A stretch of DNA of 64,000 nt from Macrostomum lignano (GCA_002269645.1 NIVC01000875.1:248001-312000); one strand, 5' to 3'. Numbered from the stretch's first letter, positions 5,553 through 57,050 are shown. Translations and numbers: made by a program. The notes: generated from the letters alone by a model not told the origin.

Positions 5553-5632
<80 letters not shown>

Positions 5633-7144: not shown

Positions 7145-8999
7145 CCACGCAGCAGCTCAGCCAGTTCGCTCTTTCCATTCTGTGTGGCGAAATCCAGCGC
7201 AGTCCTGCCGTCTCTGTCCTTCAGGCTCCAATCCGCCCCTGAGTCCAGCAGAACCCGACCGACTGCGGCGGCGGTGGCGAGGGGCGCAGTGAAGACTGCC
7301 TCCATGAGGGGCGTGAATTCAGCCGGACCTCTGGCATTCGAGGAGGCTCCGGCAGCCAGCAGAGCGGAGGCTATTGCAGAATTGCCAGCCTCGGCTGCAA
7401 GGTACAGGCAACTGACAGTCCATGTATTTGCACAGGTGGGGTCACCCAGCTGCACCAGCTGCTCCCACAGAGCCTCATCACCGCACGAGCTGTTCTGAGC
7501 TGCCCACATCAACGCGGTGCGACCGAATTCGTCAGGCAGGTCGCAGATGCCGCGGGTCGCCGCTCGCCGCAGCCCCGCCGAGTCGCCCGCCTCGGCCAGC
7601 CGCTGCAGCTCCTGTCGATCCGCCTCCTCCTGCAAAGACGAGCGGAAAATTTGAGCACAGCTGCTCAGCTGCAGCCGCATCGGCACCGCAGATGCCGCTC
7701 ACCTGGGCTGTCAGGCCGGAAATCTCGCCGAGTGCATCTACGACCAGCCGCATCTCCCTGCAACAGCAAAAATGAGCAGCCAATTTGCAGTTTTCTCAAA
7801 TCAGACAATTACCATGGCCAAAATAAAATTATCTTGTACAATTAAATCTCTTTGATCTGCTTCAATTTTTGTACTAAATTCAGTAGACAGAAATTCCTAG
7901 TTATCTGAGCTGCTCGCAGATGGAGTTTCCAAGAGGACTGCAGCAGCTCTGCAACAATCAGCATTAGCGAGAGCGCATCCGACTTCTTACACGCAGCTCA
8001 TTTTCCATTGCTGCAGCATGAGTTTCCTTCCATCTCACAATGTCTCACAAAGCACTCACACACAGCTTCCCAGTTCTCCATCTGCAGCTCAACCCACACA
8101 CTCACTGCCTCCGAGGCCCTACAGCTTCCATTCTCAACTGAGATCAAGCGTGCACCCCATTGGCTGGGAGGCAGTCAGCCAATCACAGCTGTCGCCCATC
8201 AAGCAGTCAGACAGAGACAAGCTCAGCTGACTGGCTCTGATTGGCTGGCCTGAGACTGCAGCTCTGGCCACCCTAGCCGAATGCTGCAAAACTTGATGGA
8301 CACAGCAGCGAACTGCTCACTCACCGCTCGATGTAGCTGGCCAGCTCTGAGTGGCCGCTGAGCCTCGCCAGGTCCGACGCCGTCCGACCCCCGAGATCCT
8401 TCAGTCCGAACAGCCGAGTCCTCTTCGAGTTTCCGTGCCTTCTGCACTCATTGAACCTGAACTGCCTGAGCAGGTGCAGCAGGTGCTTGGCGCATTTCCA
8501 GCTTCCAGTCCGCGCCGCCTCCATCAGCGGAGTGGCGCCGTTGTCGTTCCGCAGCCACTTCGCATCGAACGACAGCAGCGTCAGCAGCCGCAGGTGGTCC
8601 CGCCGGGCTGCCAGGTGCGCAGCCGTGTCGCCGTTCGCGTCAGCCGCCTTGGGGTTCGCGCCCAGCTCTAATAAGTACAAGATGCACTTTTCAGTCTGCA
8701 CGGGAGTCTCAGGAGCGTCGGCCGCCAGCATGAGGACGGTCCGACGAGCTGTATCAGCGCTGGTGACCAGCTGGCGCGTTGCCAGCCGCCGCACCTGGCT
8801 GAAGTCGCTTGCGATAACGTGATGTGCGAGAGACTGGAGATCGGCTGGTGATTCTCCGATGCTTGCCCGGTCATTGGGGTCCGGCTGAGTGACTTCCTGC
8901 AACTGCAATTGAGCCTACAAATATTCTGTGTCTCAGTTTTCTAACTTCAACTTTTCTTACTATTTCGTCAATTGATGGTGGTCTTTGTCGCTCTGCCAT
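7145..8999 (-). CDS. Ankyrin-repeat gene copy 1 (two ANK blocks); effector exons absent from window
   Basis: Exons 8999-8961 (MAERQRPPSIDEI), 8914-8325, 7757-7703 and 7629-7145. All GT-AG and in frame. ANK motifs include GDTAAHLAA, GATPLMEAA, GRTALMWAA and GRTALDFA. Ends at a phase-2 donor (CGT GG|gtgagt). Confidence 0.8.
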
Positions 9000-17947: not shown

Positions 17948-17963
17948 AATATTGAAATAAAAA

Positions 17964-22394: not shown

Positions 22395-22482
22395 GAGGTG
22401 AAGGTTAGATTCGGGCACTGGAGATTAGGAGATTAGGAGATTAGGTTTAGGTTTAAGAGAAAGTTTATTAAAACTCATAAAA

Positions 22483-22882
22483 ATGACGACAAATAACTTT
22501 CTTGAAGATTTGGCTAACGAACTGGAAATCCCAAACTTTAGAGGAATATTTATGAGGGACACTCTGCCTGATTTTCCTCTAAGAAAGGAATGCGGCATCA
22601 TGAACTTTGACACCACCGATAAGCCAGGATCTCATTGGGTTTGCTGGGTGATTGATCCCGATCGCAAGCACAAGTGTTATTACTTCGATAGCTATGGGAC
22701 GGCAGTACCAGAAGAGCTAAGAAATTATATGAAGGGAAAAATAATAAAAAAATTATCGCTCAGACTTTATTCTCCAAGGTCTTAGCAGTGATATTTGCGG
22801 TGAGCTGTGCATGACTGTTTTGTATGCAATGACCAAAACACGAAAGACCTACAAGGAAATTATTCTTGGCTGTGTTTCATAG
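22483..22882 (+). CDS. Adenain-type cysteine maturation protease; one frameshift
   Basis: GSHWVC and YFDSYG, then in a shifted frame after the A-run at about 22745, QGLSSDICGELC to TAG at 22882. Confidence 0.85.
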
Positions 22883-22886
22883 GGGT

Positions 22887-23627
22887 TCATTGTGCATTTC
22901 TCGTCGTCCTTCTTACCGAATTTCTTGCCGACTTTCTTTCCGCATAATGTTGAAAAACTTTCTCGAGTTCATTTTTCAGCTGACTCATGTCATCAGTACC
23001 GACCATGTTCAAGTTCATTCGAATTGATTGTTCATAAAGATCCTGAATGGTTTTGAACTCATCCTCTGAAATGAACTTATCCTCGATTGCCCTTGAAATG
23101 TACCCTATGATTGAAGTGTGCACCCCTTTCTCTTTTACTTGCTTCTCCTGTAGCTGCTTTAGTTTTTTTCGCCTGTTTCGCGCTACTGCTCCAGTAATTG
23201 CTGAAATAAGTCCACATGCAGCACCTACTGAACCAAGTGGAATTGCGATTGGGGCTGTGATGGCTGGCAACACTGAGACAGCTGCAGCAGACCCAGTTAG
23301 AACAGACACAGATCCTAGAATCATATTGCTGTAGTCGAAAAATTTACAGTGGCTGTCATAGCGCTTAATTTTCTTTGTGTTGTGGAAAATATTTTTTTCA
23401 AGATCATCGCGCATTTTTTGAATCTCCACCAATCGAAACTGCTGAGAATTACAAGAAATGACAGGGTAGAGTTTTTGTTGCTCATATTGGGGTGCATTCA
23501 GATTCGGTGCATTCAGGCTTGGTGCCAGGTTTTGTGTGTTCGAATTCGGTGCCATTGAGTTTGGTGCTGTCGGTATTTTAGGTTCAACGTATTGAGACTG
23601 ATCGTATAGAGAATTTTGTTGGGCCAT
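22887..23627 (-). CDS. Polinton accessory protein with a predicted two-helix hydrophobic hairpin
   Basis: Intact 246-aa ORF. FRLVEI...LE coiled coil, hydrophobic ILGSVSVLTGSAAAVSVLPAITAPIAIPLGSVGAACGLISAI, basic RNRRKK, and ISRAIEDKFISEDEF. Confidence 0.6.
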   Translation of the reverse strand: MAQQNSLYDQSQYVEPKIPTAPNSMAPNSNTQNLAPSLNAPNLNAPQYEQQKLYPVISCNSQQFRLVEIQKMRDDLEKNIFHNTKKIKRYDSHCKFFDYSNMILGSVSVLTGSAAAVSVLPAITAPIAIPLGSVGAACGLISAITGAVARNRRKKLKQLQEKQVKEKGVHTSIIGYISRAIEDKFISEDEFKTIQDLYEQSIRMNLNMVGTDDMSQLKNELEKVFQHYAERKSARNSVRRTTRNAQ

Positions 23628-23720
23628 TTTTTTCTCTAGAAAAAAATAAAAAAAATTATAAAACTATCCGGTTGAAAGATCTGTTTTCTTTTTGATAATT
23701 CCATCTGCACCGCCGGTTGT

Positions 23721-24530
23721 CTAGGCGGCTCTCGTGACGCCGGAGGATCGCGAGTCCAGCAGGCAGCGGCTGGGCGGCTGACGTTTGAGAGCGTGCCGGA
23801 TTACTCCGGCGGGGTCCAGAGCTCCTTCTACTCGATCTGTAGACATGACCGGACGAGCAGTAGATTCTGCTTCATCAATAGCAATATCACGAAGATTGAG
23901 TGTTCTCTCCAGACGATTAAGCCTCCTTATTATTTTACCCCAAGAGCTATACATTCCGTTTAGATAGCTACTGTGTGATACATCGTTTCTCTCTAATGCA
24001 TCAAGTCTTTCTTTAATTCTATCATGCAACGCTGTTGACTGGTTCATGAACTCTTCTAAATTATTGACTTTAACTGTGTTGGTTGCGACGTTTTCTTTAA
24101 TTCTATCATGTAATGCTGTTGACTGGTTCATGAACTCTTCTAAATTATTCACTTTAGCTATGTTTGTGAAAACTCCTCCTTCAAGAATACGCATCCGTCT
24201 ATCAATGGAATTTCCCAGAAGATTAACTGATGATCTCAAGCCGTTGATTAGCGAGACTATCGAAGTTATTTCTGACCTTAGTTCATTAGTTGCGTTTAAC
24301 AACGGCACATAAAGCTTATCACTTTCAAACTTCTGCCTAGCTACTTTAAGCCTGAGATCTTCCATGTTTATTTGCAACTGGTGCATGGAGCGCTCTAATT
24401 GTTTCAGTCTGTTTTTATTCAGTTTGATCTCTGGGATCTCTTCATCAGTGTTAATGTAGCGCTTATCAAGGAAGGAAGTTGTGAGAGTGCTGTTGCCTGT
24501 AGTTGACTCACCTGCAAAATTAATAGACAT
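23721..24530 (-). CDS. Coiled-coil protein with an internal duplication (fibre/spike candidate)
   Basis: Intact 269-aa ORF with a heptad pattern. KVNNLEEFMNQSTALHDRIKE occurs twice. Confidence 0.5.
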   Translation of the reverse strand: MSINFAGESTTGNSTLTTSFLDKRYINTDEEIPEIKLNKNRLKQLERSMHQLQINMEDLRLKVARQKFESDKLYVPLLNATNELRSEITSIVSLINGLRSSVNLLGNSIDRRMRILEGGVFTNIAKVNNLEEFMNQSTALHDRIKENVATNTVKVNNLEEFMNQSTALHDRIKERLDALERNDVSHSSYLNGMYSSWGKIIRRLNRLERTLNLRDIAIDEAESTARPVMSTDRVEGALDPAGVIRHALKRQPPSRCLLDSRSSGVTRAA

Positions 24531-24546
24531 TTTTTTAAATAAAAAA

Positions 24547-25345
24547 TTAAAGTAAAATTCTTTTCTCCTTATTAATCATGACAAACTGATAGGGTTGGTT
24601 CCACTTTTCATAGCATATGTTAACAAATTCCTCCTGTGATATTGTTCTGTTAGAGTTCTTAGCTGGATATGTAATGTGAGCTGGGGCAATGACCTCATTA
24701 TAAAATCGTTTCAGTCGATCCTGTGGTATGGTTGGGAAAAGGAGAATCAAATTACAGTTACCTCTAATTGTTTTATTTGGCAGTTCAAACCAGTTTTGGG
24801 CAATGTAAATAACATTGCAGTTATTGTGTCTACCCGGGTGAAATAATTTTCTATCTGTTTCTGGGGACCGGTCATGCAGTCATCAAAGACAATCAGGTGC
24901 TTTCTCCCCTTTTCTAGTTCATCAGGTTGAGGTAAGAGTTTAGTTTTAGGATCTATCTGTGGATCTCCATAAGTGAAAACTTTAATGTTTTGCCATTTTT
25001 CATTGTCTGGGATGTGCTTTGCGTATTCAGTGCTACAACTTCCGGGTTGCTGTTGAGGTCTTTTTGATGTCTAAAACATTGAATAATATCTTCCTTGTTG
25101 AGTTTGTTCTGTAGGCCCGCTACTAGCATTTTATACTCATCTTGATACAGAGTGGGTGAATAGATATGTAGTGTGTCATAATCGAGGAATCCAGGTCTGA
25201 GGAGCATGTTAAAAACTCTGAAGGTTTTCCCTGACCCAGATGAGCCAACAACAATGCATCGGAAGTGCCCTGGAATTATCTCGTTGTGAGCAAATTTTAT
25301 CTGATTGCGTGTCCAGTGGGGATGAAAGTCGTTTGTGAAGTCCAT
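24547..25345 (-). CDS. A32/FtsK-like packaging ATPase; two 1-nt frameshifts
   Basis: Walker A GSSGSGKT, Walker B HLIVFDD (about 24870-24900), and reconstructed FTRGRHNNCNVIYIAQ. Confidence 0.9.
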
Positions 25346-31240: not shown

Positions 31241-31709
31241 TAACGGTCGTGATTTTCTAACCATTAGAAAATTTTAATTCTGGCAATGGTCTGTGCACCA
31301 GAAACTAAATCATGTCGAATTGAACCCTGCAGCTTGCCATCTGAGCCATGCTGCACAGCATGCATGTCGCCACCCAGAGTCAAACAGCTTCATCAGTTTC
31401 GCACTCAGATTCCGATCAGACCAGATCTGCAGAGGCTGATGATGCAGCAACGCTACAAGGCAGACCGCAGCGGCCCACCGGAAAAGCGAGTGGCGGTGCA
31501 GCTGCCTGAAGCACCTGAGAGGCTGCACAGGATGCAGAAGCAGAGTTGATGATGTTTATGGTTCGCCCAGAGCCAGCTATGTAATCACAGTTCAGCTTAG
31601 CCATTGCTTCGGCATTAAAAAACTGTAAACAGTTGCCATGGCTTATCTGACTGCATCTCTTACTGGCACAAGAGTTGTCCAACCTGCACTTTGCTGCAAT
31701 TCAGTCGTG

Positions 31710-32776
31710 GCTGCAGCTGATTAACTTTATGCCTGCAGCTTTGAGCTGAGGGTTCAGACCGAATGGCTGCAGCTGATTAACTTTATGCCTGCAGCTTTGA
31801 GCTGAGGGTTCAGACCGAATGGATGCAGCTGATTAACTTTATGCCTGCAGCTTTGAGCTGAGGGTTCAGACCGAATGGCTGCAGCTGATTAACTTTATGC
31901 CTGCAGCTTTGAACTGAGAGTTCAGACCGAATGGCTGCAGCTGATTAACTTTATGCCTGCAGCTTTGAGCTGAGGGTTCAGACCGAATGGATGCAGCTGA
32001 TTAACTTTATGCCTGCAGCTTTGAGCTGAGAGTTCAGACCGAATGGATGCAGCTGATTAACTTTATGCCTGCAGCTTTGAGCTGAGGGTTCAGACCGAAT
32101 GGCTGCAGCTGATTAACTTTATGCCTGCAGCTTTGAGCTGAGGGTTCAGACCGAATGGATGCAGCTGATTAACTTTATGCCTGCAGCTTTGAGCTGAGAG
32201 TTCAGACCGAATGGCTGCAGCTGATTAACTTTATGCCTGCAGCTTTGAGCTGAGGGTTCAGACCGAATGGATGCAGCTGATTAACTTTATGCCTGCAGCT
32301 TTGAGCTGAGGGTTCAGACCGAATGGCTGCAGCTGATTAACTTTATGCCTGCAGCTTTGAACTGAGAGTTCAGACCGAATGGCTGCAGCTGATTAACTTT
32401 ATGCCTGCAGCTTTGAGCTGAGAGTTCAGACCGAATGGCTGCAGCTGATTAACTTTATGCCTGCAGCTTTGAGCTGAGAGTTCAGACCGAATGGATGCAG
32501 CTGATTAACTTTATGCCTGCAGCTTTGAGCTGAGGGTTCAGACCGAATGGCTGCAGCTGATTAACTTTATGCCTGCAGCTTTGAGCTGAGGGTTCAGACC
32601 GAATGGATGCAGCTGATTAACTTTATGCCTGCAGCTTTGAGCTGAGAGTTCAGACCGAATGGCTGCAGCTGATTAACTTTATGCCTGCAGCTTTGAACTG
32701 AGAGTTCAGACCGAATGGATGCAGCTGATTTACTTTATGCCTGCAGCTTTGAGCTGAGAGTTCAGACCGAATGGAT
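31710..32776. repeat. 56-bp tandem array, about 19 copies
   Basis: Unit gctgcagctgattaactttatgcctgcagctttgagctgagggttcagaccgaatg; period 56 measured between 31711 and 31767. Confidence 0.95.
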
Positions 32777-33145
32777 GCAACAGGACTGGGCTAGGGGATG
32801 GAGCTCCAGCTCCAGGAGACCAGCGTCTGCTCTCCATCATGCAGTCTCGCACACCGAAATTCGAATTCTATATTTCTTGGGAGATTTCTGTAATTCCCAG
32901 CGTCTCTTCTGCATCGGTCCGCAACTTTGAGTCCTGTAGCTGCGTGACTGAGAGCAAACCCCAGGTAAGTGTTGAAAATAATGAGTGCTTTTTTTCAGAA
33001 TATCTGAATTGTATTTTTTTATTGTTGCTCAGTGAGCTCAGTGAGATGGCATCAGCAGGAACTGGAGTATCTGAGTAAATAAACAGTCCAACACATACAT
33101 TGCTGCTCAGTGAGCTCAGTGAGATGGCATATCTGTCTGCCAGCC

Positions 33146-36100
33146 TCAGTTCTGGCCAGTCGCGCCCTTTTGCAGCCTCCTCCAGCGCCGCTTGGCCAGT
33201 CTCGGGTCCAAAGAGATTTTGTAGGCGAGCTGAGCGACTGTCTGAGCAACACAAAGGTAGGTGGCCCTTTTCGTTTTGTCCTCCACCGGGTTCTGCATCA
33301 TGTCGCGGTTCACTCGGGTCATGATGTTCAGCAGGTCGTCCTCCCTATAGTGCCGCTCGATCATCCGGCACAGGGTTTGCACGAACTTGGACCCGGTCTC
33401 AGGAAACCTGTAGGAGACCTGGTTCTCTGTGGTGGCGTAGCACAGCAGGAAGTCGGCTTTGGACGGAGAGAAGGCCGGCAGGGGCTTCGGGACTTGCGGC
33501 TCGTTGAACTTCGTACTGCTGTCGTTTAGGGGTGCATCGTGATGCTGACCGCGGCAGGCCTGGATGAAAAATATCTTCGGCTTGCGGGCCAGACTCGGGC
33601 AGCAGCTCGACTGGAGGGAGGGAGAGTAGCGCTGAGAGTGGCGCTGGGAGCGAAGCTGAGAGTGGCGCTGAGAGTGGCGCTGAAAGTGGCGCTGAAAGTG
33701 GCGTTGAGAGTGGCGCTGAGAGTGACGCTGGGAGTGGCGCTGGGAGTGGCGTTGAGAGTGGCGCTGAGAGTGGCACTGAGAGTGACGCTGGGAGTGGCGC
33801 TGAGAGCGAACCTGAGAGTAGCGCTGAGAGTGGCGCTGGGAGCGAAGCTGAGAGTGGCGCTGAGAGTGGCGCTGAAAGTGGCGCTGAAAGTGGCGTTGAA
33901 AGTGGCGCTGAAAGTGGCGTTGAGAGTGGCGCTGAGAGTGGCGCTGAAAGTGGCGCTGAAAGTGGCGTTGAGAGTGGCGCTGAGAGTGACGCTGGGGGTG
34001 GCGCTGGGAGTGGCGCTGAGAGTGGCGCTGGGAGTGGCGCTGAGAGTGGCGCTGAGAGTGGCGCTGGGAGTGGCGCTGAGAGTGGCGCTGAGAATGGCGT
34101 TGAGAGTAGAAATGAAAGTAGAGCGGAAAGTGGCGCTGAAAGTAGCGGAAAAATATTTACAACTTCTGCACCCACCTGAAATATTTTGGTGACATCAGGA
34201 ATTTTGCACAGCCTTCCGTCGGAGCCGTACACGCCGTCCGGGCTGCCGTGAGCCATGAGAAAGCAGACGAAGCAGCCGTGCCGCTCCAGCTGGTCTGAGC
34301 GCTGCAGCTGCCTCAGGCATTGGAGAATTCCATCGGCTGTGAGGTCCTCCTCCAACGTCACGGTGAATCGCAGCTTTCCGAACACTTCCTTCACTCGCTC
34401 CACATCCCACTGTGAGCCTTCGCGATTCTCCAAGAGGCTGCTAGCTGAGTACTTGTACTTGTTGATGTTGATGATGAGGCAGAAGCCTTGCGGGTCCGTC
34501 ACTTGGTAGAAATCTTCATCAAGTCTGAAATGCCGCCAGAGTTTTTGCTGTGCTGTAGCTGTGTGTGCTGTAGCTGTGTGTGCTGTAGCTGTGTGTGCTG
34601 TAGTTGTGTGTGCTGTAGCTGTGTGTGCTGTAGCTGTGTGTGCTGTAGCTGTGCGTGCTGTAGTTGTGTGTGCTGTAGCTGTATGTGCTGTAGATGTGTG
34701 TGCTGTAGCTGTGTCTGCTGTAGTTGTGTGTGCTGTAGCTGTGTGTGCTGTAGTTGTGTGTGCTGTAGCTGTGTGTGCTGTAGCTGTGTGTGCTGTAGCT
34801 GTGTGTGCTGTAGTTGTGTGTGCTGTAGCTGTATGTGCTGTAGATGTGTGTGCTGTAGCTGTGTCTGCTGTAGCTGTGTGTGCTGTAGCTGTGTGTGCTG
34901 TAGTTGTGTGTGCTGTAGCTGTGTGTGCTGTAGCTGTGTGTGCTGTAGCTGTGTCTGCTGTAGTTGTGTGTGCTGTAGCTGTGTGTGCTGTAGCTGTGTC
35001 TGCTGTAGTTGCGTGTGCTGTAGCTGTGTGTGCTGTAGCTGTGTGTGCTGTAGTTGTGTGTGCTGTAGATGTGTGTGCTGTAGCTGTGTGTGCTGTAGCT
35101 GTGTCTGCTGTAGTTGTGTGTGCTGTAGCTGTGTGTGCTGTAGCTGTGTCTGCTGTAGTTGTGTGTGCTGTAGCTGTGTGTGCTGTAGCTGTGTGTGCTG
35201 TAGCTGTGTCTGCTGTAGCTGTGTGTGCTGTAGCTGTGTATGCTGTAGCTGTGTGTGCTGTAGCTGTATGTGCTGTAGCTGTGTGTGCTGTAGCTGTGTC
35301 TGCTGTAGTTGTGTGTGCTGTAGCTGTGTGTGCTGTAGCTGTGTGTGCTGTAGCTGTGTGTGCTGTAGCTGTATGTGCTGTAGCTGTGTGTGCTGTAGCT
35401 GTGTGTGCTGTAGCTGTGTGTGCTGTAGCTTTGTGTGCTGTAGCTGTGTGTGCTGTAGCTTTGTGTGCTGTAGCTGTGTGTGCTGTAGCTGTGTGTGCTG
35501 TAGCTGTGTGTGCTGTAGTTGTGTGTGCTGTAGATGTGTGTGCTGTAGCTGTGTGTGCTGTAGTTGTGTGTGCTGTAGCTGTGTGTGCTGTAGCTGTGTG
35601 CTGTAGCTGTGTGTGCTGTGCTGTGTGTGCTGTAGCTGTGTGCTGTAACTGTGTGTGCTGTAGCTGTGTGTGCTGTAGCTGTGTGTGATGTTGCTGTGTG
35701 TGATATTGCTGTGTGTGTGTAGCTGTGTGTGATGTTGCTGTGTGTGCTGTAGCTGTGTGTGCTGTAGCTGTGTGTGCTGTAGCTGTGTGTGCTGTAGCTG
35801 TGTGTGACGTTGCTGTGTGCGATGTTGCTGTGTGTGCTGTAGCTGTGTGTGACGTTGCTGTGTGCGATGTTGCTGTGTGTGCTGTAGCGGTGTGCTGTAG
35901 CTGTGTGTGCTGTAGCTGTGTGCTGTAGCTGTGAGTGATGTAGCTGTGTGCTGTAGCTGTGTGTGCTGTAGCTGTGTGTGCTGTAGCTGTGTGTGCTGTA
36001 GCTGTGTGTGATGTTGCTGTGTCTGCTGTAGCTGTGTGTGATGTAGCTGTGTGCTGTAGCTGTGTGCTGTAGCTGTGTGTGCTGTAGCTGTATGTGCTGT

Positions 36101-37816
36101 AGCTGTGTGTGCTGTAGCTGTGTGTGCTGTAGCTGTGTGTGATGTTGCTGTGTGTGCTGTAGCGGTGTGTGATGTAGCTGTGTGCTGTAGCTGTGTGTGA
36201 TGTTGCTGTGTGTGCTGTAGCTGTGTGTGCTGCAGGTGTGTGTGATGTTGCTGTGTGTGCTGTAGCTGTGTGTGCTGTAGCTGTGTGTGCTGTAGCTGTA
36301 TGTGCTGTAGCTGTATGTGCTGTAGCTGTGTGTGCTGTAGCTGTGTGTGCTGTAGCTGTGTGAGATGTTGCTGTCTGTGCTGTAGCTGTGTGTGCTGTAG
36401 CTGTGTGTGCTGTAGCTGTGTGAGATGTTGCTGTCTGTGCTGTAGCTGTGTGTGCTGTAGCTGTGTGTGCTGTAGCTGTGTGAGATGTTGCTGTGTGTGC
36501 TGTAGCTGTGTGTGCTGTAGCTGTGTGTGCTGTAGCTGTGTGTGCTGTAGCTGTGTGCGATGTTGCTGTGTGTGCTGTAGCGGTGTGCTGTAGCTGTGTG
36601 TGCTGTAGCTGTGTGCTGTAGCTGTGAGTGATGTAGCTGTGTGATGTTGCTGTGTGTACTGTAGCTGTGTGTGCTGTAGCTGTATGTGCTGTAGCTGTGT
36701 GCTGTAGCTGTGTGCTGTAGCTGTGTGTGTTGTAGAGAACTCACAGATGGTCATTGGAGTAGCTCCCTCCTTCATATCTGAAATATGTAGAGCATAATGT
36801 TTTTAGAATTTATAAAAATATTTTCTTTTAAGTTAAAATTGTTTCATAAATACTAAAACACGCAAATAGATAAAACAAATATTTTTTACTAATACTGCTT
36901 GTATTTTTCATTCTGTTTCGTTCTGATATTTCTGGCTCAGCAAAATGCTTGCTGTTGTCTCACAGCTCGCAGGCAGCTGAACATTAATATTCAACTGGAA
37001 TCTGCAGTCAAACTGCACTGCAAACTCCCTCAAAGCAGCTCAGTCAGTGTCTGCTGCCCATTTAAACTACAGAAATGTAAAAATGCCCACTCAGAGCAAC
37101 TGCAGTCAGCTGCTCAATATTCAATCATAAATTACAGCATATTGTTTATCAATGATAAATCAAAATCAGAGAGACATTCTCAGTCGCCATGGAAACTCAC
37201 CCACGCAGCAGCTCAGCCAGTTCGCTCTTTCCATTCTGTGTGGCCAAATCCAGCGCAGTCCTGCCGCTTCTGGTCTTCAGGCTCCAATCCGCCCCTGAGT
37301 CCAGCAGAACCCGACCGACTGCGGCGGCGGTGGCGAGGGGCGCAGTGAAGACTGCCTCCATGAGGGGCGTGAATTCACACAAATCCGTAGCATTGGCGGA
37401 GGCTCCGGCAGCCAGCAGAGCGGAGGCTGAGGCAGAATTGCCAGCAACGGCTGCACGGTGCAGGCAACTGTCAGCCAACATATTATTCGCACAGGTGGGG
37501 TCACCCAGCTGCACCAGCTGCTCCCACAGAGCCTCATCACCGCACGAGCTGTTCCGAGCTGCCCACATCAACGCGGTGTAACCAAATTCGTCAGGCAGGT
37601 CGCAGATGCCGCGGGTCGCCGCTCGCCGCAGCCCCGCCGAGTCGCCCGCCTCGGCCAGCCGCTGCAGCTCCTGTCGATCCGCCTCCTCCTGCAAAGGCGA
37701 GCGGGAAATTTGAGCACAGCTGCTCAGCTGCAGCCGCATCGGCACCTCAGATGCCGCTCACCTGGGCTGTCAGACCGGAAATCTCGCCGAGTGCATCTAC
37801 GACCAGCCGCATCTCC
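33146..37816 (-). CDS. Ankyrin-caspase fusion gene (ankyrin family copy 2)
   Basis: Exons 37816-37762, 37688-37201 (ANK), 36777-36745 (mini-exon), 34524-34176 (FCLIIN...LMAHG) and 33610-33146 (KPKIFFIQACRG...ADFLLCYAT...GSKFVQTLC). All GT-AG, with phases 0, 2, 2 and 0 giving one frame. First in-frame ATG is at 37812. Confidence 0.85.
33620..34140. repeat. 12-bp minisatellite (gagtggcgctga) in the caspase intron between the His and Cys exons
   Basis: Tandem copies between the donor at 34175 and the acceptor at 33611. Confidence 0.9.
34552..36733. repeat. 15-bp satellite (TGTAGCTGTGTGTGC)n, intronic
   Basis: About 2.2-kb array; the same family occurs at 43371-43819. Confidence 0.95.
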
Positions 37817-38439
37817 CTGCAACAGCAAAAATGAGCAGCCAATTTGCAGTTTTCTCAAATCAGACAATTACCATGGCCAAAATAAAATTATCTTGTACGA
37901 TTAAATCTCTTTGATCTGCTTCAATTTTCGTACTAAATTCAGTAGACAGAAATTCCTAGTTATCTGAGCTGCTCGCAGATGGAGTTTCCAAGAGGCTGGC
38001 AACTGGCAGCGCCTTCACTTGACCTCTCCAGGCACTTCTGGTGAGATGCCGCCGCCCGTCACGTGACCCGCTGGGCGCGCTCTGAGCTCAGGTGACTGGG
38101 AGCAGCTCGGCTACCCTCAGGGGCCGAAGAGCTGATGGGTCCGGACTCGATCCCGGACCTTCGGGCCTGAGCCAATCCGTCAGTGCGATGGGACTGGGAG
38201 TTCACTGCGTTTGTTCCGGTTGATTAGTGATGTCGTTGCTTTTATGGCACTGGACTTCAAACTCCTGCATCTGCAAATCCAGTTGCCAAAAAAGTGGCTA
38301 GTAGCAAAGAGGTTGGTTAGAGTCTCACTGCATTTCTTAAACTAGTTGGGCAGCTAACCTGTACTGAATGCTGTGGCCCAAGCAATGCCTAGGAATTCAG
38401 TAACGAATGCTCGCCAGGGAGCTGCGTCTGTCCCAGGCA

Positions 38440-40552
38440 CAATATTGATTTTGCAGGCACAGTATTGATTATGCAGGCACAGTATTGATTATGCAGGCAC
38501 AGTATTGATTTCTGAAACTGGATGGGAGCAATGGCTCTCGTATTTCTTCTGTGAATTTCTGTTTTGAAGTCGTGTGAATCTAAGTGCCTCTCCCGGAGTG
38601 CCTCTCCCTGAGTGCCTCTCCCTGAGTGCCTCTCCCGGAGTGCCTCTCCCCAAGTGCCTCTCCCTGAGTGCCTCTCCCTGAGTGCCTTTCCCTGAGTGCC
38701 TCTCCCGGAGTGCCTCTCCTACGGCGTGATTACAAGCATTCAACAAGCATTGCATTTCACATAGATCGAATCAGACAACTTATCCAACTATGCGATCAAA
38801 ACTTAAGCGACATCTTCATAGGGCAAGAGATTTGTTCCGAAAGCCAGTTTAAAACACAAGGCTATGACATTGATAAATACCCATTCGGGCGCTTACGTCT
38901 CGTGAATGTTTTGTGCTAGGCTGCATTGACACCGAAAAGCGATGCCGATCTCTGGTTCTACTTGATCAGGTGGGCCCGGTATTGCATTTCTTCCCCAACT
39001 GAGCCACGCAACCCAGCTTTTGACCTCCGACTGAATTTGGCTGGACAGGTGTTGCCCACATGAGGACTTGTCCCAGGGTTGCTCACATGAGGACTTGTCC
39101 CAGGGTTGCTCACATGAGGACTTGTCCCAGGGTTGCTCACATGAGGACTTGTCTCAGGGTTGCTCACATGAGGACTTGTTTCAGTGTTGCCCACATGAGG
39201 ACTTGTCCCAGGGTTGCTCACATGAGGACTTGTCCCAGGGTTGCTAACATGAGGACTTGTCTCAGGATTGCTCACATGAGGACTTGTCCGAGGGTTGCTC
39301 ACATGAGGACTTGTCCCAGGGTAGCTCACATGAGAACTTGTCCCAGGGTTGCTCACATGAGGACTTGTCCCAGGGTTGCTCACATGAGGACTTGTCCCAG
39401 GGTTGCTCACATGAGGACTTGTCTCAGGATTGCTCACATGAGGACTTGTCCGAGGGTTGCTCACATGAGGACTTGACCTGCCTGTGACCAATTTCTTCTG
39501 CAGCTGCAGCAGGCAAAGTTGCCCGTGCCGTGTGCGGTCTGCAGCCTGAAAAAACCCGGCTTGTCACAAGTCCAATTCGGTTTAGACTTCATTGCCGAGC
39601 ATCTCTCTCGAGCTTCTCTTCGAGACCTCGGACCTGAATTTTGGAACTGAGGACGGACTGACCCAGTCTTTCGACACTACCTCGAGCTCACATTCCAAAG
39701 TCAGTCAAGCCATCTGGGTAAAGGCCTGGTGTTGTGTGGTCCGCTGAGAAGGGTCCTCTAATCTCTGCAGCTGCCTCTACTCTCTCTGCAGCTGCCTCTA
39801 CTCTCTCTGCAGCTGCTTCTACTCTCTCTGCAGCTGCCTCTACTCTCTCTGCAGCCGCCTCTACTCTCTCTGCAGCTGCATCTACTCTCTCTGCAGCTGC
39901 CTCTACTCTCTCTGCAGCCGCCTCTACTCTCTCTGCAGCTGCATCTACTCTCTCTGCAGCTGCCTCTACTCTCTCTGCAGCCGCCTCTACTCTCTCTGCA
40001 GCCGCCTCTACTCTCTCTGCAGCTGCCTCTACTCTCTCTGCAGCTGCATCTACTCTCTCTGCAGCTGCATCTACTCTCTCTGCAGCCGCCTCTACTCTCT
40101 CTGCAGCCGCCTCTACTCTCTCTGCAGCCGCCTCTACTCTCTCTGCAGCTGCATCTACTCTCTCTGCAGCTGCATCTACTCTCTCTGCAGCCGCCTCTAC
40201 TCTCTCTGCAGCTGCATCTACTCTCTCTGCAGCTGCATCTACTCTCTCTGCAGCCGCCTCTACTCTCTCTGCAGCTGCATCTACTCTCTCTGCAGCTGCA
40301 TCTACTCTCTCTGCAGCCGCCTCTACTCTCTCTGCAGCTGCATCTACTCTCTCTGCAGCCGCCTCTACTCTCTCTGCAGCCGCCTCTACTCTCTCTGCAG
40401 CTGCATCTACTCTCTCTGCAGCTGCATCTACTCTCTCTGCAGCTGCATCTACTCTCTCTGCAGCCGCCTCTACTCTCTCTGCAGCCGCCTCTACTCTCTC
40501 TGCAGCTGCATCTACTCTCTCTGCAGCTGCCTCTACTCTCTCTGCAGCTGCT
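38440..40552. repeat. Minisatellite cluster: 20-bp (38440-38510), 14-bp (38585-38715), 27-bp (39058-39475) and 21-bp (39760-40552)
   Basis: Units gcaggcacagtattgattat; gagtgcctctccct; cacatgaggacttgtcccagggttgct; ctctactctctctgcagctgc. Confidence 0.9.
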
Positions 40553-41049
40553 GTTTCAGCATCTCACTCTCTTCCACCGCCCCAATTTCATTTAACACTT
40601 TATCAGCAGTTGAGTTAAACAAACACGGCAACCACTCAGTGCTGAGAGTCGGGCAGTTCCGGTATGCTAGAGAGTCGCAAATGAGTATATTTGAGTAATT
40701 CCTCACAAAGCTCACAAAATAGCGACAGCAGCTAATGGCTAACAGCAAAGAAATTGAGTGAAGCAAAGCATTTGAGCAGTTAAACTGCTTGAGGATAGAG
40801 GAGATCAGTTAACGCCTGCGGTGCAGATAAACAAGTTGAGCTTAAATGAGAAACGTCAATTGGTGCATCTGGAACTCAGTCACAGGGGAATTGATGCAGT
40901 ATGCAAGTTTTAGCACTGCAAAGAGTCACGTAAAAAATTCAGGAAAATGGAAAAAAAAAGCACAAAACAACTTTAAATAGTGCTTTACTTACGTGCATCG
41001 TGCATAAAATATCTAAAATCTTTACAAACATATTCAGAAGTATCTCGGC

Positions 41050-44000
41050 TTAGCGCTGCGAGTCAGACTTTTTCACCAGGAACTCGTGCTTCAGCAGCTC
41101 CTGTGCGGATCTTCTTCTCCTGCGGTCCTTGGCGGTGCAGCGGCTGTAGAAATCCCTCAGTTCCGCAGACCGGCCGTCCGGCAGGGCGGGGGCGCCCTTC
41201 CTGTCAAGATGCTGGGCCATTTCCCAGAAGCTTTTGACTCTGGTGAATGGTTTGTTACCGGAGGCCATCTGGAAGACCGAGCAGCCGAACGCCCAGATGT
41301 CCGACTCTCTGCTGCACTGAAAGCATTCAGAGGTGCCGATTCCGAGCAGCTCTGGCGCCATGAAGTTCAAAGTGCCTTTCAATGCCTCCGGGAATGATGA
41401 GTGGCGACGGACTATCTGCTCCAGCTTGATTGACAGGCCGAAGTCGATCAGCTTGATTCGCGTGTTGTCAGCACAAACAATTATGTTGGAGCAGTTGATG
41501 TCTCTGTGGATCACGGGCGGCTGCGGCTGTGCAGGTAGAGCAGCGCGCGGCAGATCTGCGAGCGGTCGGTCAGTGAGCAGCATCATTCATGGGAACATGG
41601 AACAGGAGCATCAAGGATGCACAATGCTCACCTGCTCGCTGAAGTCTCGAATCGTCAGCTCGTACAGTGGCCTGTTGTCGATAAACCTCTCCAAGCTTCG
41701 GCCGTCCAGCAGCTCCATGAACACAACGACTGTGGCGGGCTCCGGCTGAGCGATGTGCAAGAACCTGACGATGTTGGGATGCCGCAGTCGGCACAGGTTT
41801 TTCTCGCTCTTGACAGCTCTGTGGATCTCTGTGCTCACAGAGGTTTGGTCATCACCGAGCTGCACAGGCAGTCTGAGAGTCTTGGCAGCGCACCTGATGT
41901 CTCTGTCAGTGACAACTTCCTGAATGTCACCAAAGAATCCTCTTGCAACGAACCGAGTGGAGTCCCAACTCTCCCTGAAAACGGGGCTGTTAGGAAAAGT
42001 GGAAAGCGAGTCAGGATGCGTTAAGCCGCTGATCAGAATTTTGGCATCGCCTGACAGACAGGCTAAAATGAGGAGATGCGCGGGAGTCACAGCAGTTGAA
42101 GGAATTGATTGGATTTCATTCCAGTAAAACTCAGCTCTCACAGATTCACGGCAAATTGCTCGCACTGTTTTTAAGTCTGATCAGGGCTTCTGCTTCATCG
42201 AAGGGAATTGAGCACAATATTTCTCCGAGCTTCAAGCTGGCGCCTCAATGATCAGTGCTCAAAGTATGCGGTGCAACTTTAGCGTGAGCACATGGTGAGG
42301 CCGCTTGACTACTGATGAAAAGTGCAACATTGGTCTCACCTCTGCATCAGCATCATATCGCACAGGTATCTAAGTCTAGCCGAATTACTGTACATTTGTA
42401 CCTGACGATGAGGAACTCGTGCCCCATCAGCTCCAGTGCGGACTTTCTGCTTTTTCGGTCCATGGCGGTGCAGCGGCTGTAGAAGTCCTGCAGCTCCGCA
42501 GAGCAGCCCGTCAGCAGGGCGGGGGCACCGCCGCTTCTCAGCTTCTCGGGCAGCGTCTGGGGCATTTTGTGCTCAGCGAAGGGCCGCCTGCCCGAGGCCA
42601 TCTGGAAGACCGAGCAGCCGAACGCCCAGATGTCCGACTCTCTGCTGTACCGCGGGCTGTCCGACTCTTCCGGTGCCAGCAGCTCCGGAGCCAAGAAGTT
42701 AAGAGTGCCTTCGGGGGTGGCTTTGGAGGCTGAGATGTGGCTGACTGACTGCTCCAGCTTGACTGACAGGCCGAAGTCGATCAGCTTGATTCGCGTGTTG
42801 TCGGCACAAACAATTATGTTCGAGCAGTTGATGTCTCTGTGGATCACGGGCGGCTGCCGGCTGTGCAGGTAGATCAGCGCGCGGCAGATCTGCGAGCGGT
42901 CGGTCAGTGAGCAGTCATCATTTATGAGAACATGGAACAGGAGCATCAAGGATGCACAATGCTCACCTGCTCGCTGAAGTCTCGAATCGTCAGCTCGTAC
43001 AGTGGCCTGTTGTCGATAAACCTCTCCAAGCTTCGGCCGTCCAGCAGCTCCATGAACACAACGACTGTGACGGGCTCCGGCTGAGCGATGTGCAAGAACC
43101 TGACGATGTTGGGATGCCGCAGTCGGCACAGGTTTTTCTCGCTCTCGACAGCTCTGTGGATCTCTGTTCTCACAGAGGGCAGCTCATCAACAAGCTGCAC
43201 AGGAAGTTTAAGAGTCTTGGCAGCGCACGTGACGCCCGTGTCAGTTCGAACTTCGTGGACTTCGCCGAAGCCACCGCGACCGATGAGGCGAACGGCGTCC
43301 CAGCGCTCCCGGAACGGGGGGCCTTCGGGACTGAGAGGATGCGAAGTGAAGCAATGAGGGATAATTTGCATGCTGTAGCTGTGTGTGCTGTAGCTGTGTG
43401 CTGTAGCTGTGTGTTGTAGCTGTGTGTGCTGTAGCTGTGTGTTGTAGCTGTGTGTGCTGTAGCTGTGTGCGCTGTAGCTGTGTGCTGTAGCTGTGTGATG
43501 TAGCTGTGTGTGCTGTAGCTGTGTGTGCTTTAGCTATGTGCTGTAGCTGTGTGTTGTAGCTGTGTGTGCTGTAGCTGTGTGCTGTAGCTGTGTACTGTAG
43601 CTGTGTGCTGTAGCTGTGTGTGATGTAGCTGTGTGTGCTGTAGCTGTGTGCTGTAGCTGTGTGTGATGTAGCTGTGTGTGCTGTAGCTGTGTGCTGTAGC
43701 TGTGTGTGATGTAGCTTTGTGTGCTGTAGCTGTGTGCTGTAGCTGTGTGTGCTGTAGCTGTGTGCTGTAGCTGTGTGCTGTAGCTGTGTGCTGTAGCTGT
43801 GTGCTGTAGCTGTGTGCTGAAGGAACTCACGGCAGTGCCATAGGCTCATCGAAGTAGATCTTGTCGTCGTACCTAAATGGGCAGTGCAAAGTCTTAAGTC
43901 AGGAAATTCAGATAGGAGTCCATCCATGCTCTGTGCTTCATTATATAGTTTTTATTGTTTTTTATTAAAATAACTATTCCTAATAATTTTGAGCTCAAAT

Positions 44001-45998
44001 GCCACACCACAATGCTTCTTGCTGGTGTCTCACAGCTCGCAGGCAGCTGAACATTAACATTTAACTTGCAATCTGCAGTCAAACTGCACTGCAAACTCCA
44101 TTTAAACTACAAAACTCATTCAATATTCAATCATAAATTACAGCATATTGTTTATCAATGATAAATCAAAGTGAGAGTGACATTCTCAGTCGCCATGGAA
44201 ACTCACCCACGCAGCAGCTCAGCCAGTTCGCTCCTTCCCTTTTGTGTAGCCAAATCCAGCGCAGTCCTGCCGTTTCTGTCCTTCAGGCTCCAATCCGCCC
44301 CTGAGTTCAGCAGAACCTGACCGACTGCGGCGGCGGTGGCGGGGTGCGCAAAGGCCGCCCCCATGAGGGCCGTGAATTTCCAGTGACCCCTGGCATTGGT
44401 GGAGGCTCCGGCAGCCAGCAGAGCGGAGGCTGCGGAAGAATTGCCAGCCAAGGCTGCATGGTGCAGGCAACTGTCAGCACATTTATCCGCACAGGTGGGG
44501 TCACCCAGCTGCACCAGCTGCTCCCACAGAGCCTCATCACCGCACGAGCTGCTTTGAGCTGCCCACATCAACGCGGTGCGACCCTCATCGTCAGGCAGGT
44601 CGCAGCTGCCGCAGGTCGCCGCTCGCCGCAGCCCCGCCGAGTCGCCCGCCTTGGCCAGCCGCTGCAGCTCCTGTCGATCCGCCTCCTCCTGCAAAGGCGA
44701 GCGGGAAATTTGAGCACAGCTGCTCAGCTGCAGCCGCATCGGCACCGCAGATGCCGCTCACCTGGGCTGTCAGGCCGGAGATATAGCCGTGTGCATCCAC
44801 AACCAGCCGCATCTCCCTGCAACAGCAACAATGAGCAGCGATGTCGCAGTTGTCTCAAACACGACAATTACGATTGCTAAAATAAAGTTTAAGAAGTTGC
44901 AGGACAAAATTTTTTCTCTTATCGATCACATGGATGCCTACCTGCCTACCCACCTACCGACAAACCATTTTTAGTATATGAATTCTTAATTATCTGAGCT
45001 GCCCACAGACAGTTTCGAAGAGGACTGCAGCAGCTCTGCAACAATCAGCATTGGCGAGAGCGCATCCGACTTCTCACACGCAGCTCATTTTCAATTTCTG
45101 CAGCATGAGTTTCCTTCCATCTCACAATGTCTCACAAAGCACTCACGCACAGCCTCCCAGTTCTCCATCTGCAGCTCAACCCACACACTCTCACTGCAAT
45201 ACGAGGCCCTACAGCTTCTGCGCAACAGCAACTGAGATCAACCGCCACCCCATTAGCTGGGAGGCATGGACACAGAAGCGAACTGCTCACTCACCGCTCG
45301 ATGTAGCTGGCCAGCTCTGAGTGGCCGCTGAGCTTCGCCAGGTCCGACGCCGTCCGACCCTCGGAATTCTTCAGTTCGAGCAGCCTCTTCGAGTTTCCAT
45401 GCTCCAGACACTTAATGAAACTTTTCTGCCTGAGCAGGTGCAGCAGGTGCTTGGCGCATTTCCAGCTTCCAGTCTGCGCCGCCTCCATCAGCGGAGTGGC
45501 GCCGTTGTCGTTCCGCAGCCACTTCGCATCGAACGAAAGCAGCGTCAGCAGCCGCAGGTGGTCCCGCCGGGCTGCCAGGTGCGCAGCCGTGTCGCCGTTC
45601 GCGTCAGTCGCCTTGGGGTTCGCGCCCAGCTCAAATAAGTACAAGATGCACTTTTCAGTGTGCACGGGAGTTTCAGAAGCGTCGGCCACCAGCATGAGGA
45701 CGGTCCGACGAGCTTCATCAGCGCTGGTGACCAGCTGGCGCGTTGCCAGCCGCCGCACCTGGCCGAAGTCACCTCGGCTGACAAGCTGGTCGAGAGTCTG
45801 GAGATTCGAACATGTGAGTGAGTTGCTGCAACTACAACTGAGGCACACGCGCTGCACACGAGGAAGTAAGTACAAAGAAAAAATATTTTATTTAATTTAC
45901 TGCTTTAACACACAGAAACAAATATAATACTTTAATCAAAATTAAACAGTAATTTAATAAGGTACCTTATCCTGTTCCTTAGAGGCTTCACTGCCCAT
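41050..45998 (-). CDS. Ankyrin-ankyrin-tandem Ser/Thr kinase gene (ankyrin family copy 3); 1-nt frameshift in kinase 2
   Basis: Exons 45998-45966 (MGSEASKEQDK), 45851-45295, 44816-44762, 44688-44207, 43872-43831, 43330-42967, 42889-42402, 41986-41632 and 41555-41050. Kinase motifs IGRGGFGEV, AAK, HRDINCSN, DFG, APE and SDIWAFG resemble MAP3K/STE11. A missing base near 41525 shifts kinase 2. Confidence 0.8.
43371..43819. repeat. Satellite (TGTAGCTGTGTG[TG]C)n, intronic
   Basis: Same family as 34552-36733 and in the equivalent intron. Confidence 0.95.
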
Positions 45999-54400: not shown

Positions 54401-55402
54401 TTTGCTCATATTGCATATAATGTAGTAGGCCCCTAATCATTATCAACAAAGATATTATTTAGGTAGCTCATATCTAGGGAACTTACAATATATGTAATAT
54501 TGTAACTTCTTATTAGACTTAATTATATGTTTGTTCCTTCTTTATATCTTTGGTCTCATTGATATTGTCATTAACATTAATGATAAATTTGTTGTTTATT
54601 CAAAAAATAATTAGCATAAATTTATTAATCAATTAGTACAAAAAATCTTAATGGTAGTCCATTAACAACAATGCAAAATTTTAATGCTTATAATAGACTG
54701 GTGTTCAACATTGCACTAAATAGAAATTTGTTAAAATGTTCTTTTTGTAATAATATTGTTACATTTTTCTCATTTTCTCATTGATAGACTGACACTCAAG
54801 GCTAAGCCTAAGTGAATTAGGGACCTCAATAAGGATTTTATGACTTGTCAATATGCATATAAGCAGCAATTCTTAATTAAAAAAGTAACCTTTTAGAAAT
54901 GAATAATTTTGCATTTTAGGCCTGAGACAAACTTTTTTAGCCAATGTTTCTCAATAAACTAACCATTGTAACCACGTTTAATCAAACACAGGAGATGGAA
55001 TTTCTCACTAGTAGTCTGCAAAATCTCAAGACAGTACAGCAGAAATTCATGGACTCTAAAGAGGCTGTGGAACGATTAACTCCCGATCGGGCCAACTCTG
55101 AGACTCTGGTGCCAATGACCAGCACCCTGTATGTGCTGGGCCGGCTGTGTCCGCCTGACAAGGTCACGGTGGACATTGGCACAGGCTACTACGCCGATAT
55201 GACACCAACTCAAGCGGCTGATTTCTTTCAGCGCAAAGCCGAATTTCTGGCTAAAGAGATTGAGAAAGTTCAGCCGGGTTTGCAGGAGAAGTATGCCACG
55301 AAACAGGTGGTGACGGAGGTGCTTCAGGCCAAGGTTAAAGTGGCCGTGTCCAGCCAACAGGCCAGCACTGCTCAGGCTCAGGCGGGTGGCAACCAGCCCT
55401 GA
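51488..55402 (+). CDS. PFDN5: Prefoldin subunit 5 (alpha type), two exons
   Basis: Exon 51488-51559 (MAQSVPINQLSIPQLREVLEKIDE|gtaag) plus exon 54992-55402 (EMEFLTSSLQNLK...LVPMTSTLYVLG...VTVDIGTGYY...FFQRK). Phase-0 intron of about 3.4 kb. Confidence 0.9.
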
Positions 55403-56889: not shown

Positions 56890-57050
56890 TCTTGGGCTAA
56901 GCGGCTTAATAGCAAAAGCAACGAATGCTACTACAAGGTTTTGACGTGTAGAATTTATTAGAAAAGGTTAGTTCCTTCATTTGCTTGCAAGACTGATGTA
57001 CTTTTATATTGCAATCCCCCCTTACAACTCAAGCGCATTCGCAGTCTGTC

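Follow-up and report, generated by a model that had tools for sequence, protein, structure and literature searches.

Background

Caspases with an ankyrin (ANK) prodomain were noted in Schistosoma (Lee et al. 2014, Trends Parasitol), and a 2024 survey of lophotrochozoans (Genome Biol Evol, PMC11463336) reported them to be restricted to parasitic flatworms, one annelid excepted. In the same survey (PMC11463336), the platyhelminth ANK caspases formed a monophyletic clade whose sister group was the DED caspases, and a single caspase with a kinase prodomain was listed for Macrostomum lignano, with no other unusual flatworm prodomain. Here a 64,000-nt stretch of the genome of this free-living flatworm (GCA_002269645.1, NIVC01000875.1:248001-312000) is analyzed and is referred to as the window; positions are counted from its first letter. 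It contains three related genes, A, B and C, all on the minus strand. Genes B and C share a block of ankyrin repeats, hereafter the chassis, which is followed by a caspase in gene B and by kinase domains in gene C.

In vertebrates, the CARD, DED and DD domains are common to caspases (caspase-2, -8 and -9) and kinases (RIPK1, RIPK2 and the IRAKs). Ankyrin repeats and a kinase are combined in the animal proteins ILK and TNNI3K, where the repeats are N-terminal, and in RIPK4/ANKK1 and DAPK1, where the kinase is N-terminal.

Gene structure and splice junctions

The window has eukaryotic features, namely introns and abundant minisatellites, and a bacterial-style reading of its open reading frames (ORFs) was dropped on these grounds. 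The ankyrin, caspase and kinase ORFs, which an initial annotation had joined into genes, are parts of spliced genes: the junctions are GT-AG, the frames are open and the junction peptides recur in M. lignano proteins. Each gene pair member is built from the chassis, a linker exon, a mini-exon and one of two effectors. The features of gene C, B and A are given below (a slash marks an exon boundary).

45966..45998, minus strand: gene C exon 1, ATG at 45998, MGSEASKEQDK; donor AAG/gtacc, phase 0
45295..45851, minus strand: gene C exon 2 (ANK1, about four repeats, conserved core); ends ATC GAG CG/gtgagt, phase 2
44762..44816, minus strand: gene C 55-nt exon EMRLVVDAHGYISGLTAQ, phase 2 to 0; a 73-nt intron follows
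44207..44688, minus strand: gene C ANK2 (about four repeats, hypervariable at binding positions); ends CGT GG/gtgagt, phase 2
43831..43872, minus strand: gene C mini-exon YDDKIYFDEPMALP, 42 nt, phase 2-2; matches YDGKIYFDEPLALP of P0015
43371..43819, minus strand: minisatellite CACACAGCTACAG, period 13-15, in the intron between the gene C mini-exon and the kinase exon
42402..43330, minus strand: kinase 1 (K1) cassette, exons 43330-42967 and 42889-42402, 852 nt, phase 2-2
41050..41974, minus strand: kinase 2 (K2) cassette, exons 41974-41632 and 41555-41050; frame agrees with the K1 donor
37762..37816, minus strand: gene B 55-nt exon EMRLVVDALGEISGLTAQ, in-frame ATG at 37812; the first family exon present in this gene
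37201..37688, minus strand: gene B ANK2; ends CGT GG/gtgagt, phase 2
36745..36777, minus strand: gene B mini-exon YEGGSYSNDHL, 33 nt, phase 2-2; a degenerate form of the family motif
34549..36735, minus strand: the same minisatellite as in gene C (CACACAGCTACAG), about 148 copies, in the intron between mini-exon and caspase
34176..34524, minus strand: gene B caspase exon 1 (part of p20), LDEDFYQVTDPQGFCLIINI…, with the REGSQWD arginine and the MAHG histidine; one leading nucleotide
33146..33610, minus strand: gene B caspase exon 2, with QACRG, the inter-subunit linker, p10 and the stop at 33146-33148
7145..8999, minus strand: paralogue A, exon 1 8999-8961 MAERQRPPSIDEI, ANK1 8914-8325, 55-nt exon 7757-7703, ANK2 7629-7145

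The junctions agree with the initial annotation throughout. Both ANK2 exons end in CGT GG/gtgagt in phase 2, at 37201 and 44207; the mini-exons 36777-36745 and 43872-43831 are flanked by AG and GT and are in phase 2 on both sides; the caspase exon at 34524 and the kinase exon at 43330 each continue in frame with one leading nucleotide. Every junction of both genes is GT-AG. The spliced frame of gene B has 462 open codons over five exons. That of gene C is complete from ATG to stop: it begins with the ATG at 45998 and, unless kinase 1 is followed by a splice, stays open for 689 codons, since the K1 donor GTC AG/gtacaa (42402), left unspliced, leads to a stop at 42353.

The window genes were compared with M. 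lignano proteins from the BOX15 gene models, a genome-guided RNA-seq assembly (StringTie/TACO; PMC5730564), and with three M. lignano loci, namely L001 (ANK-caspase, P0001), L002 (ANK-kinase, P0014) and L003 (ANK-kinase-caspase). DNA identity to the paralogous loci was 88-94%, introns included. The gene C junction peptide ELAELLRG/YDGKIYFxEPLALP/PEGPPFxERWD was found in P0014, P0015 and P0020, and its gene B counterpart in P0001, which reads ELLRG/YEGKVYFNEPLALP/(38-aa linker)/LEGDFYPVTDPQGYCLIIN. The ANK-caspase architecture and its junction are shared by P0001, P0004 and P0009. In P0002, ELLRG is joined directly to LDGDFYPV, which indicates that the mini-exon can be skipped in frame. Mapping of P0001 and P0014 to L001 and L002 gave an identical order of exons, with the 42-nt mini-exon again a separate one, and the exon phases are kept at all three loci. 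Further upstream, the MGS… start of gene C exon 1 recurs in P0011 and P0029, the peptide EMRLVVDAHGYISGLTAQ is also present in M. lignano proteins, and P0002 begins at the Met equivalent to the ATG of the gene B 55-nt exon. As the same junction peptides occur in RNA-seq-derived models, the splice pattern is supported by transcripts in the M. lignano family.

These data also bear on the possibility that the spliced genes are an artefact of joining exons by hand, with the ankyrin, caspase and kinase ORFs being separate genes and the in-frame junctions coincidental. Standalone caspase and ANK-only models do exist in M. lignano (P0025 and P0007), and the ANK2 donor overlaps an in-frame TGA (37197/44203). 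However, several independent RNA-seq-derived models share the junction peptides, the exon phases are conserved at three loci, and no start codon opens the effector exons, which have a single leading nucleotide. This explanation is already largely refuted and deserves hardly any credence.

The gene C start, MGSEASK, fits the MGxxxS consensus for N-myristoylation, and the Cys-rich stretch RVCLSCSCS (45851-45790) that follows it is a potential palmitoylation site. MGS… starts were found in P0004, P0011 and P0029 and MA(Q/E)R… starts in other M. lignano family members, which suggests two alternative types of first exon and possible membrane anchoring.

Caspase and kinase domains

Domains were assigned in the spliced proteins using Pfam profiles. 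The gene B effector matched Peptidase_C14 (8e-52) and contains MAHG, QACRG, REGSQWD and SYRFPETGS in the spliced frame. The domain most resembles that of caspase-8 (2e-40), and its catalytic His and Cys and S1 Arg residues are all preserved. Outside Macrostomum, its nearest database relatives are DED caspases of the caspase-8/-10 type, as would be expected of a member of the platyhelminth ANK-caspase clade. On these residues, the gene B effector is a predicted active caspase (peptidase C14A), and by its architecture gene B would be classified as an ANK caspase whose window copy carries the second ANK block only.

Between the His and Cys exons, the caspase intron (33611-34175) contains a 12-nt minisatellite, GAGAGTGGCGCT x44, at 33622-34147. 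This array is open in one frame and thus appears in the mechanical ORF list as a 367-aa 'SAPLSAPL' ORF.

In kinase 1 all motifs were found (GRGGFG, CAAK, EIHRAVESE, HRDINCSN, DFG and APE; Pfam Pkinase 2e-47), and by motif content it is a putatively competent eukaryotic protein kinase. The nearest solved structures are WNK1, ASK1 and MEKK2, at about 1e-25 only; the domain can be described as a predicted Ser/Thr kinase of STE/MAP3K/WNK-like type with no clear orthologue. The kinase region is a tandem duplication, K1 and K2 being 86% identical. The splice from 42402 to 41974 joins them in frame (…HEFLIV-R-ESWDSTRFVARGFFGDIQEV…), and the same junction is shared by P0122, with two kinase domains, and P0121, with three. 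The K1-K2 junction fits the tandem kinase of the initial annotation, but as assembled a 1-nt deletion breaks the frame of K2 in the window, and gene C is a candidate tandem kinase. K2 was also considered as a pseudokinase; this was dropped, as its loop reads AxGxxG but the Lys, HRD and DFG are intact, so that it is not clearly dead.

Gene family in Macrostomum lignano

A catalogue of the chassis family was made from 55 M. lignano representatives of 90%-identity clusters, taken from two overlapping annotations. It holds 18 chassis-kinase, 10 chassis-caspase and 26 chassis-only representatives, the last being mostly short models that end at the mini-exon. The central proposal of the initial annotation was one chassis joined at a common phase-2 junction to either effector, and it is borne out across a whole Macrostomum family, the chassis being 74-90% identical between members. 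The expectation of several effector classes is not: no third class was found on the chassis among the 55 representatives. Some members, namely P0121, P0122 and P0123, have kinase domains in tandem.

An exhaustive protein search covered 1.84 billion representatives, and 20 of the best 150 matches were named. Among these named matches, all close relatives of the gene B and C proteins and every close chassis match belonged to M. lignano, and no neodermatan sequence was present. The combination of ANK and caspase was also found in predicted proteins of one jellyfish (Pfam-checked) and of two gastropods, the latter judged by match coordinates and source names.

The arrangement had been put forward initially as not described in animals, which is not correct for its caspase half, since ANK-prodomain caspases have been published for flatworms and one annelid (PMC11463336). 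At the same time, the M. lignano data contradict the published distribution of these caspases (PMC11463336). The published M. lignano kinase-prodomain caspase is one member of a much larger chassis family. The protein P0228 (BOX15_Mlig018903, locus L003, three gene copies) is a divergent chassis relative with kinase and caspase in one polypeptide; its gene has a separate phase 2-2 mini-exon and phase-2 acceptors for both the kinase and the caspase. The P0228 kinase is joined to the caspase via a linker exon, and in P0133 the ANK repeats are C-terminal. A second, unrelated ANK chassis (a 70-residue double repeat) likewise occurs with either effector: P0139 has the caspase and P0135 a kinase of the family described above (E = 9e-66 between the two).

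Only Ank, Peptidase_C14 and Pkinase were matched by Pfam in the spliced proteins, with no death-fold domain (CARD, DED, DD or PYD), and an NTPase domain is listed for none of the M. lignano family members. The whole N-terminus matched generic ankyrin and DARPin structures only. Lacking an NTPase and a death fold, the encoded protein is not an NLR-like machine. The analogy with fungal NLR/HET systems drawn in the initial annotation holds for modularity and is limited to it, as NACHT/NB-ARC, TIR and death-fold domains were absent by Pfam.

Other M. lignano caspase fusions were seen as well. They comprise LRAT(PF04970)-caspase, Ras/Roc-caspase and other ANK-caspases (P0038/P0145/P0148, P0237, P0290/P0291), all of them absent from the 2024 survey (PMC11463336). 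P0133 has the order kinase-kinase-pseudocaspase-ANK, and its caspase-like domain lacks the catalytic His and Cys. In L002, a tandem array at 10089-10486 (54-nt period, about 7.5 copies) consists of the 5' part of the ANK1 exon region (…CTCAATTGCAGTTGCAGGAACTCAC…), and the annotated gene P0014 takes its exons from two successive chassis copies.

Module boundaries and the junction minisatellite

The modules are symmetric in phase 2: the 55-nt exon together with ANK2 measures 543 or 537 nt, the mini-exon 33 or 42 nt and the kinase 1 cassette 852 nt. Boundaries of this kind allow duplication, loss or exchange of a module without a break of the frame. In the window, the junction minisatellite CACACAGCTACAG fills nearly the whole intron between mini-exon and effector, ending 24-40 nt from the acceptor. 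Over the 64 kb it gave 29 matches against 0 expected, all confined to these two introns. The same array lies directly after the mini-exon in the ANK-caspase of L001 (14293-14637) and behind each of the three L002 chassis copies; in one case the next chassis copy follows the array immediately. A distance of 55 nt or less between the array and the effector acceptor was recorded for the window copies, L001 and the L002 copies alike. An array shared at this position suggests that effector exchange and chassis duplication proceeded by recombination within it, and the minisatellite is probably the likeliest substrate for the exchange of effectors.

The mini-exon often encodes (I or V)YFD/E, a sequence that resembles an initiator-caspase cleavage motif and is placed exactly between chassis and effector. 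As a candidate caspase cleavage site, IYFD/E was rejected, the Asp not being conserved (D, Y, E, N or K among members).

Evolutionary rates of the ankyrin blocks

Ratios of nonsynonymous to synonymous substitution (dN/dS) were estimated by the Nei-Gojobori method for the three window copies and three M. lignano copies. For the ANK2 exon, dN/dS was 1.03-4.5 in 15 of 15 pairs, which derive from six sequences and are not independent. The values were 0.57-1.36 for ANK1, whose core is almost invariant, and 0.41-0.68 for the kinase exons. In the youngest pair, A and B, the ANK2 exon differs by 6.6% and the flanking introns by 2.4%.

At least three residues were found in 25 ANK2 columns, and 12 of the 25 fall on the 20 positions given by positions 2, 3, 5, 13 and 14 of the four repeats (p = 7e-7). 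These repeat positions are the ones that Binz and colleagues, in 2003, reportedly randomised in designed ankyrin binders. The pattern is suggestive of diversifying selection on the ANK2 binding face, although it is not proof of it. The name 'sensor', used in the initial annotation, thus gains some support from the ANK2 rates of one or more and from variable columns at binding positions, with the reservation that the rates come from six sequences in non-independent pairs.

Interpretation of the cluster

Taken together, we consider it fairly probable that the window holds part of a Macrostomum-specific multigene family in which a shared ankyrin chassis serves as a proximity-activated prodomain for a caspase-8-like or a kinase effector. 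A full member has an N-terminal chassis of eight repeats (conserved ANK1, the 55-nt linker exon and hypervariable ANK2), then the short conserved mini-exon and either a caspase-8-like domain or one or two STE/MAP3K-like kinases. The caspase form would be an initiator-type caspase with ankyrin repeats in place of the DED prodomain. The chassis may be a protein-binding prodomain, with ANK1 as a constant docking or assembly surface and ANK2 as a rapidly diversifying recognition surface, and could gather caspase or kinase molecules on a partner. Activation of the caspase would then occur by induced proximity, as in DED and CARD caspases, and the kinase paralogue would turn the same recognition event into phosphorylation. 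Any involvement in defence, stress or regulated cell death is a matter of guesswork.

Several points weigh against this interpretation. The transcript support comes from other M. lignano copies, and none of it from the window loci themselves. Gene B is without the first two exons of the family (exon 1 and ANK1) and so may be unexpressed or need another 5' end. Downstream of paralogue A, no effector, mini-exon or junction minisatellite was found in 1-7144. K2 exon 2 lacks one G near 41523 (agccgCagcc versus agccgGCagcc), which gives a frameshift and a stop as assembled. The gene of the divergent P0228 (L003) has no minisatellite, so that the repeat is not required for the architecture and is a feature of this subfamily. 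Of the 15 non-independent ANK2 pairs from six sequences, 7 reached nominal p < 0.05, and synonymous differences are also elevated at the variable ANK2 codons, to which patchy gene conversion could contribute. Finally, a ligand of the ankyrin repeats, activation by proximity and an action in immunity or cell death are parts of the model that we infer.

Some of these points would also be expected if the window copies were debris of birth-and-death evolution, that is, decaying partial duplicates produced by repeat-driven duplication, with no working gene pair. Gene B could be read as a 5'-truncated, promoterless copy: its 95% homology to paralogue A ends within an intron, at 37998, with only tandem arrays upstream, and no ANK1 or exon-1 copy for it was found in 38000-41000 (blastn, tblastn). 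The stop in K2, the density of minisatellites in the region and the many M. lignano family models that are ANK-only or frame-shifted (e.g., P0018, P0223) point in the same direction, as does paralogue A, whose 5' end is complete and whose chassis loses homology about 55 nt past the ANK2 donor. However, gene B retains all five exons with their 462 open codons, all catalytic residues and splice sites, and gene C is intact from ATG to stop. With the missing base restored, K2 is open to the family-typical end (…KKSDSQR and stop) with dN/dS of about 0.5-0.7, so that its lesion is very recent or an assembly error. We regard the debris explanation as rather doubtful, though not negligible.

The missing 5' end of gene B may be seen differently if genes C and B, which lie head-to-tail, are co-transcribed as one complex unit with kinase and caspase as alternative or combined 3' cassettes. 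The in-frame ATG, the frequency of spliced leader (SL) trans-splicing and the phase-compatible donors 42402 and 43831 offer candidate routes for the expression of gene B. SL trans-splicing at acceptor 37816 would make use of the ATG at 37812; cis-splicing of the K1 donor 42402 to 37816 would give ANK-kinase-ANK-caspase; cis-splicing of the gene C mini-exon (43831) to 34524 would give a full chassis with caspase. All these donor and acceptor pairs are in phase 2 with open frames, the Met of the 55-nt exon is also where P0002 begins, and an ANK-kinase-caspase protein does exist (P0228, three gene copies). Trans-splicing affects 38.8% of M. lignano genes, and about 7% of the species' transcriptional units are polycistronic (PMC5730564). 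On the other side, 3.2 kb of minisatellites separate the K2 stop from 37816, no kinase-ANK2-caspase model was present among the matches (P0228 and P0133 have other orders), and the window locus has provided no transcript evidence for such a unit. A single transcription unit is therefore unlikely in our view.

The identity of the ANK2 blocks bears on a further explanation, in which the ankyrin domain is an intramolecular inhibitor of its own effector that is activated by release or by cleavage of the linker. Designed ankyrin repeat proteins are known to inhibit caspases (cited in PMC11463336), and a conserved short linker exon, often I/V-Y-F-D/E and a possible caspase site, lies between chassis and effector. 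Yet near-identical ANK2 blocks (up to 81-89% identity) are carried by two structurally unrelated effectors, which would be surprising for a surface fitted to a single active site. In the linker motif the Asp varies (D, Y, E, N, K), and a single-sequence AlphaFold2 model of the gene B protein was uninformative (pLDDT 42). Inhibition by the chassis thus seems very unlikely.

A stronger version of the preferred model, that of a chassis activating its effectors by proximity, would make the family a germline recognition repertoire. ANK2 would bind foreign or altered-self ligands and trigger the caspase or kinase directly, without an NTPase or death-fold adaptor, and recombination in the minisatellite introns would diversify the set. 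We hold this extension to be distinctly unlikely at present.

Other features of the window

At 38583-40551, three unrelated minisatellites of 14 nt (x10), 27 nt (x16) and 21 nt (x38) take up most of the gap that separates gene B from gene C, and they give rise to spurious long ORFs on either strand. A very regular 56-nt tandem array of 19 copies with 97% identity lies at 31708-32779, immediately downstream of the caspase gene. From 1 to 7000, about 7 kb of strand-skewed, AG-rich low-complexity sequence (CT-rich on the gene strand) extends to the window edge; the GC skew is about +0.5 and the AT skew +0.3 to +0.4 in the first 4 kb, and by 6-8 kb the values are about +0.26 to +0.37.

A large, degraded integrase/PolB element at 16724-25000 is a DNA transposon remnant, possibly Maverick/Polinton-like. 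It contains an rve integrase ORF at 16724-17944 (Pfam 1e-10) and frameshifted ORFs at 21004-22391 in which motifs resembling family-B DNA polymerase (YGWAMS…, LYTDTDSF) were recognized by eye; Pfam gave no match for these polymerase-like pieces. Coiled-coil ORFs on the minus strand were also found in this region. Downstream of the cluster, two ORFs of ordinary housekeeping type encode a prefoldin subunit (9e-23; 54941-55399, plus strand) and a NUDIX hydrolase (2e-18; 56997-57497, plus strand).

Significance

ANK caspases, so far a reported oddity of parasitic flatworms without a known activator, are abundant in a tractable free-living flatworm. RNAi is established in M. lignano. Transgenesis has been reported as well (PMC5730564). 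The question of the ANK-caspase activator thereby becomes testable. The ankyrin module of these caspases also serves a kinase family, and its predicted binding face evolves unusually fast. Modules in phase 2 and a junction minisatellite can account for the exchange of effectors, presumably by recombination, and the family offers a clear-cut case from nature of exons shuffled between a death protease and a kinase. Should the ankyrin face recognise non-self, it would represent a new class of animal innate immune or allorecognition receptor; if it does not, the published distribution of ANK caspases is still corrected.

Comparison with known systems

The caspase half of the family is of an already known kind, while the sharing of the chassis, the gene architecture and the evolutionary signature are new. 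In the literature searched on Macrostomum or caspases together with ankyrin, no description was found of a chassis shared with kinases, of a junction minisatellite or of a fast-evolving ANK2. Like gene B, the platyhelminth ANK caspases have an N-terminal ankyrin prodomain and p20/p10 subunits, are nearest to DED caspases (caspase-8) and come from the flatworm phylum. They were reported from parasitic species only (PMC11463336), whereas the present ones belong to free-living Macrostomum, where in addition the ankyrin module is shared with a kinase family, ANK2 is hypervariable and the junction consists of a mini-exon and a minisatellite intron.

The M. lignano kinase-prodomain caspase has a related chassis (ANK1, a 36-nt exon, ANK2 and the mini-exon) and the same kinase and caspase families as the window genes. 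It differs in carrying both effectors in one polypeptide, in having no minisatellite and in being much more divergent, whereas the window genes have one effector each. Its ankyrin repeats and the related kinase-only and caspase-only families were not reported in the survey (PMC11463336).

Among animal ankyrin-kinases, ILK and TNNI3K combine ankyrin repeats and a kinase in one polypeptide in the same order as gene C. There is no apparent orthology, and the present family differs from these kinases in its lineage-specific expansion, its often tandem kinases and its caspase-bearing twins. Fungal NLR/HET proteins, plant NLRs with integrated domains (NLR-ID) and tandem-kinase resistance proteins likewise show combinatorial domains, multigene expansion and a fast-evolving repeat domain, and some members of the chassis family have tandem kinases too. 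In contrast to the fungal and plant NLR systems, the chassis family has no NACHT/NB-ARC, its repeats are N-terminal and it has only two effector classes.

The closest functional analogy in animals is provided by the vertebrate death folds, where, as with the ankyrin chassis, one N-terminal domain of adaptor type is found on a caspase or on a kinase. In vertebrate death-fold proteins, shared platforms recruit both types of effector, whose activation is by proximity. The death folds are six-helix, homotypic and conserved domains, whereas in the M. lignano family this place is taken by an ankyrin solenoid with a hypervariable surface.

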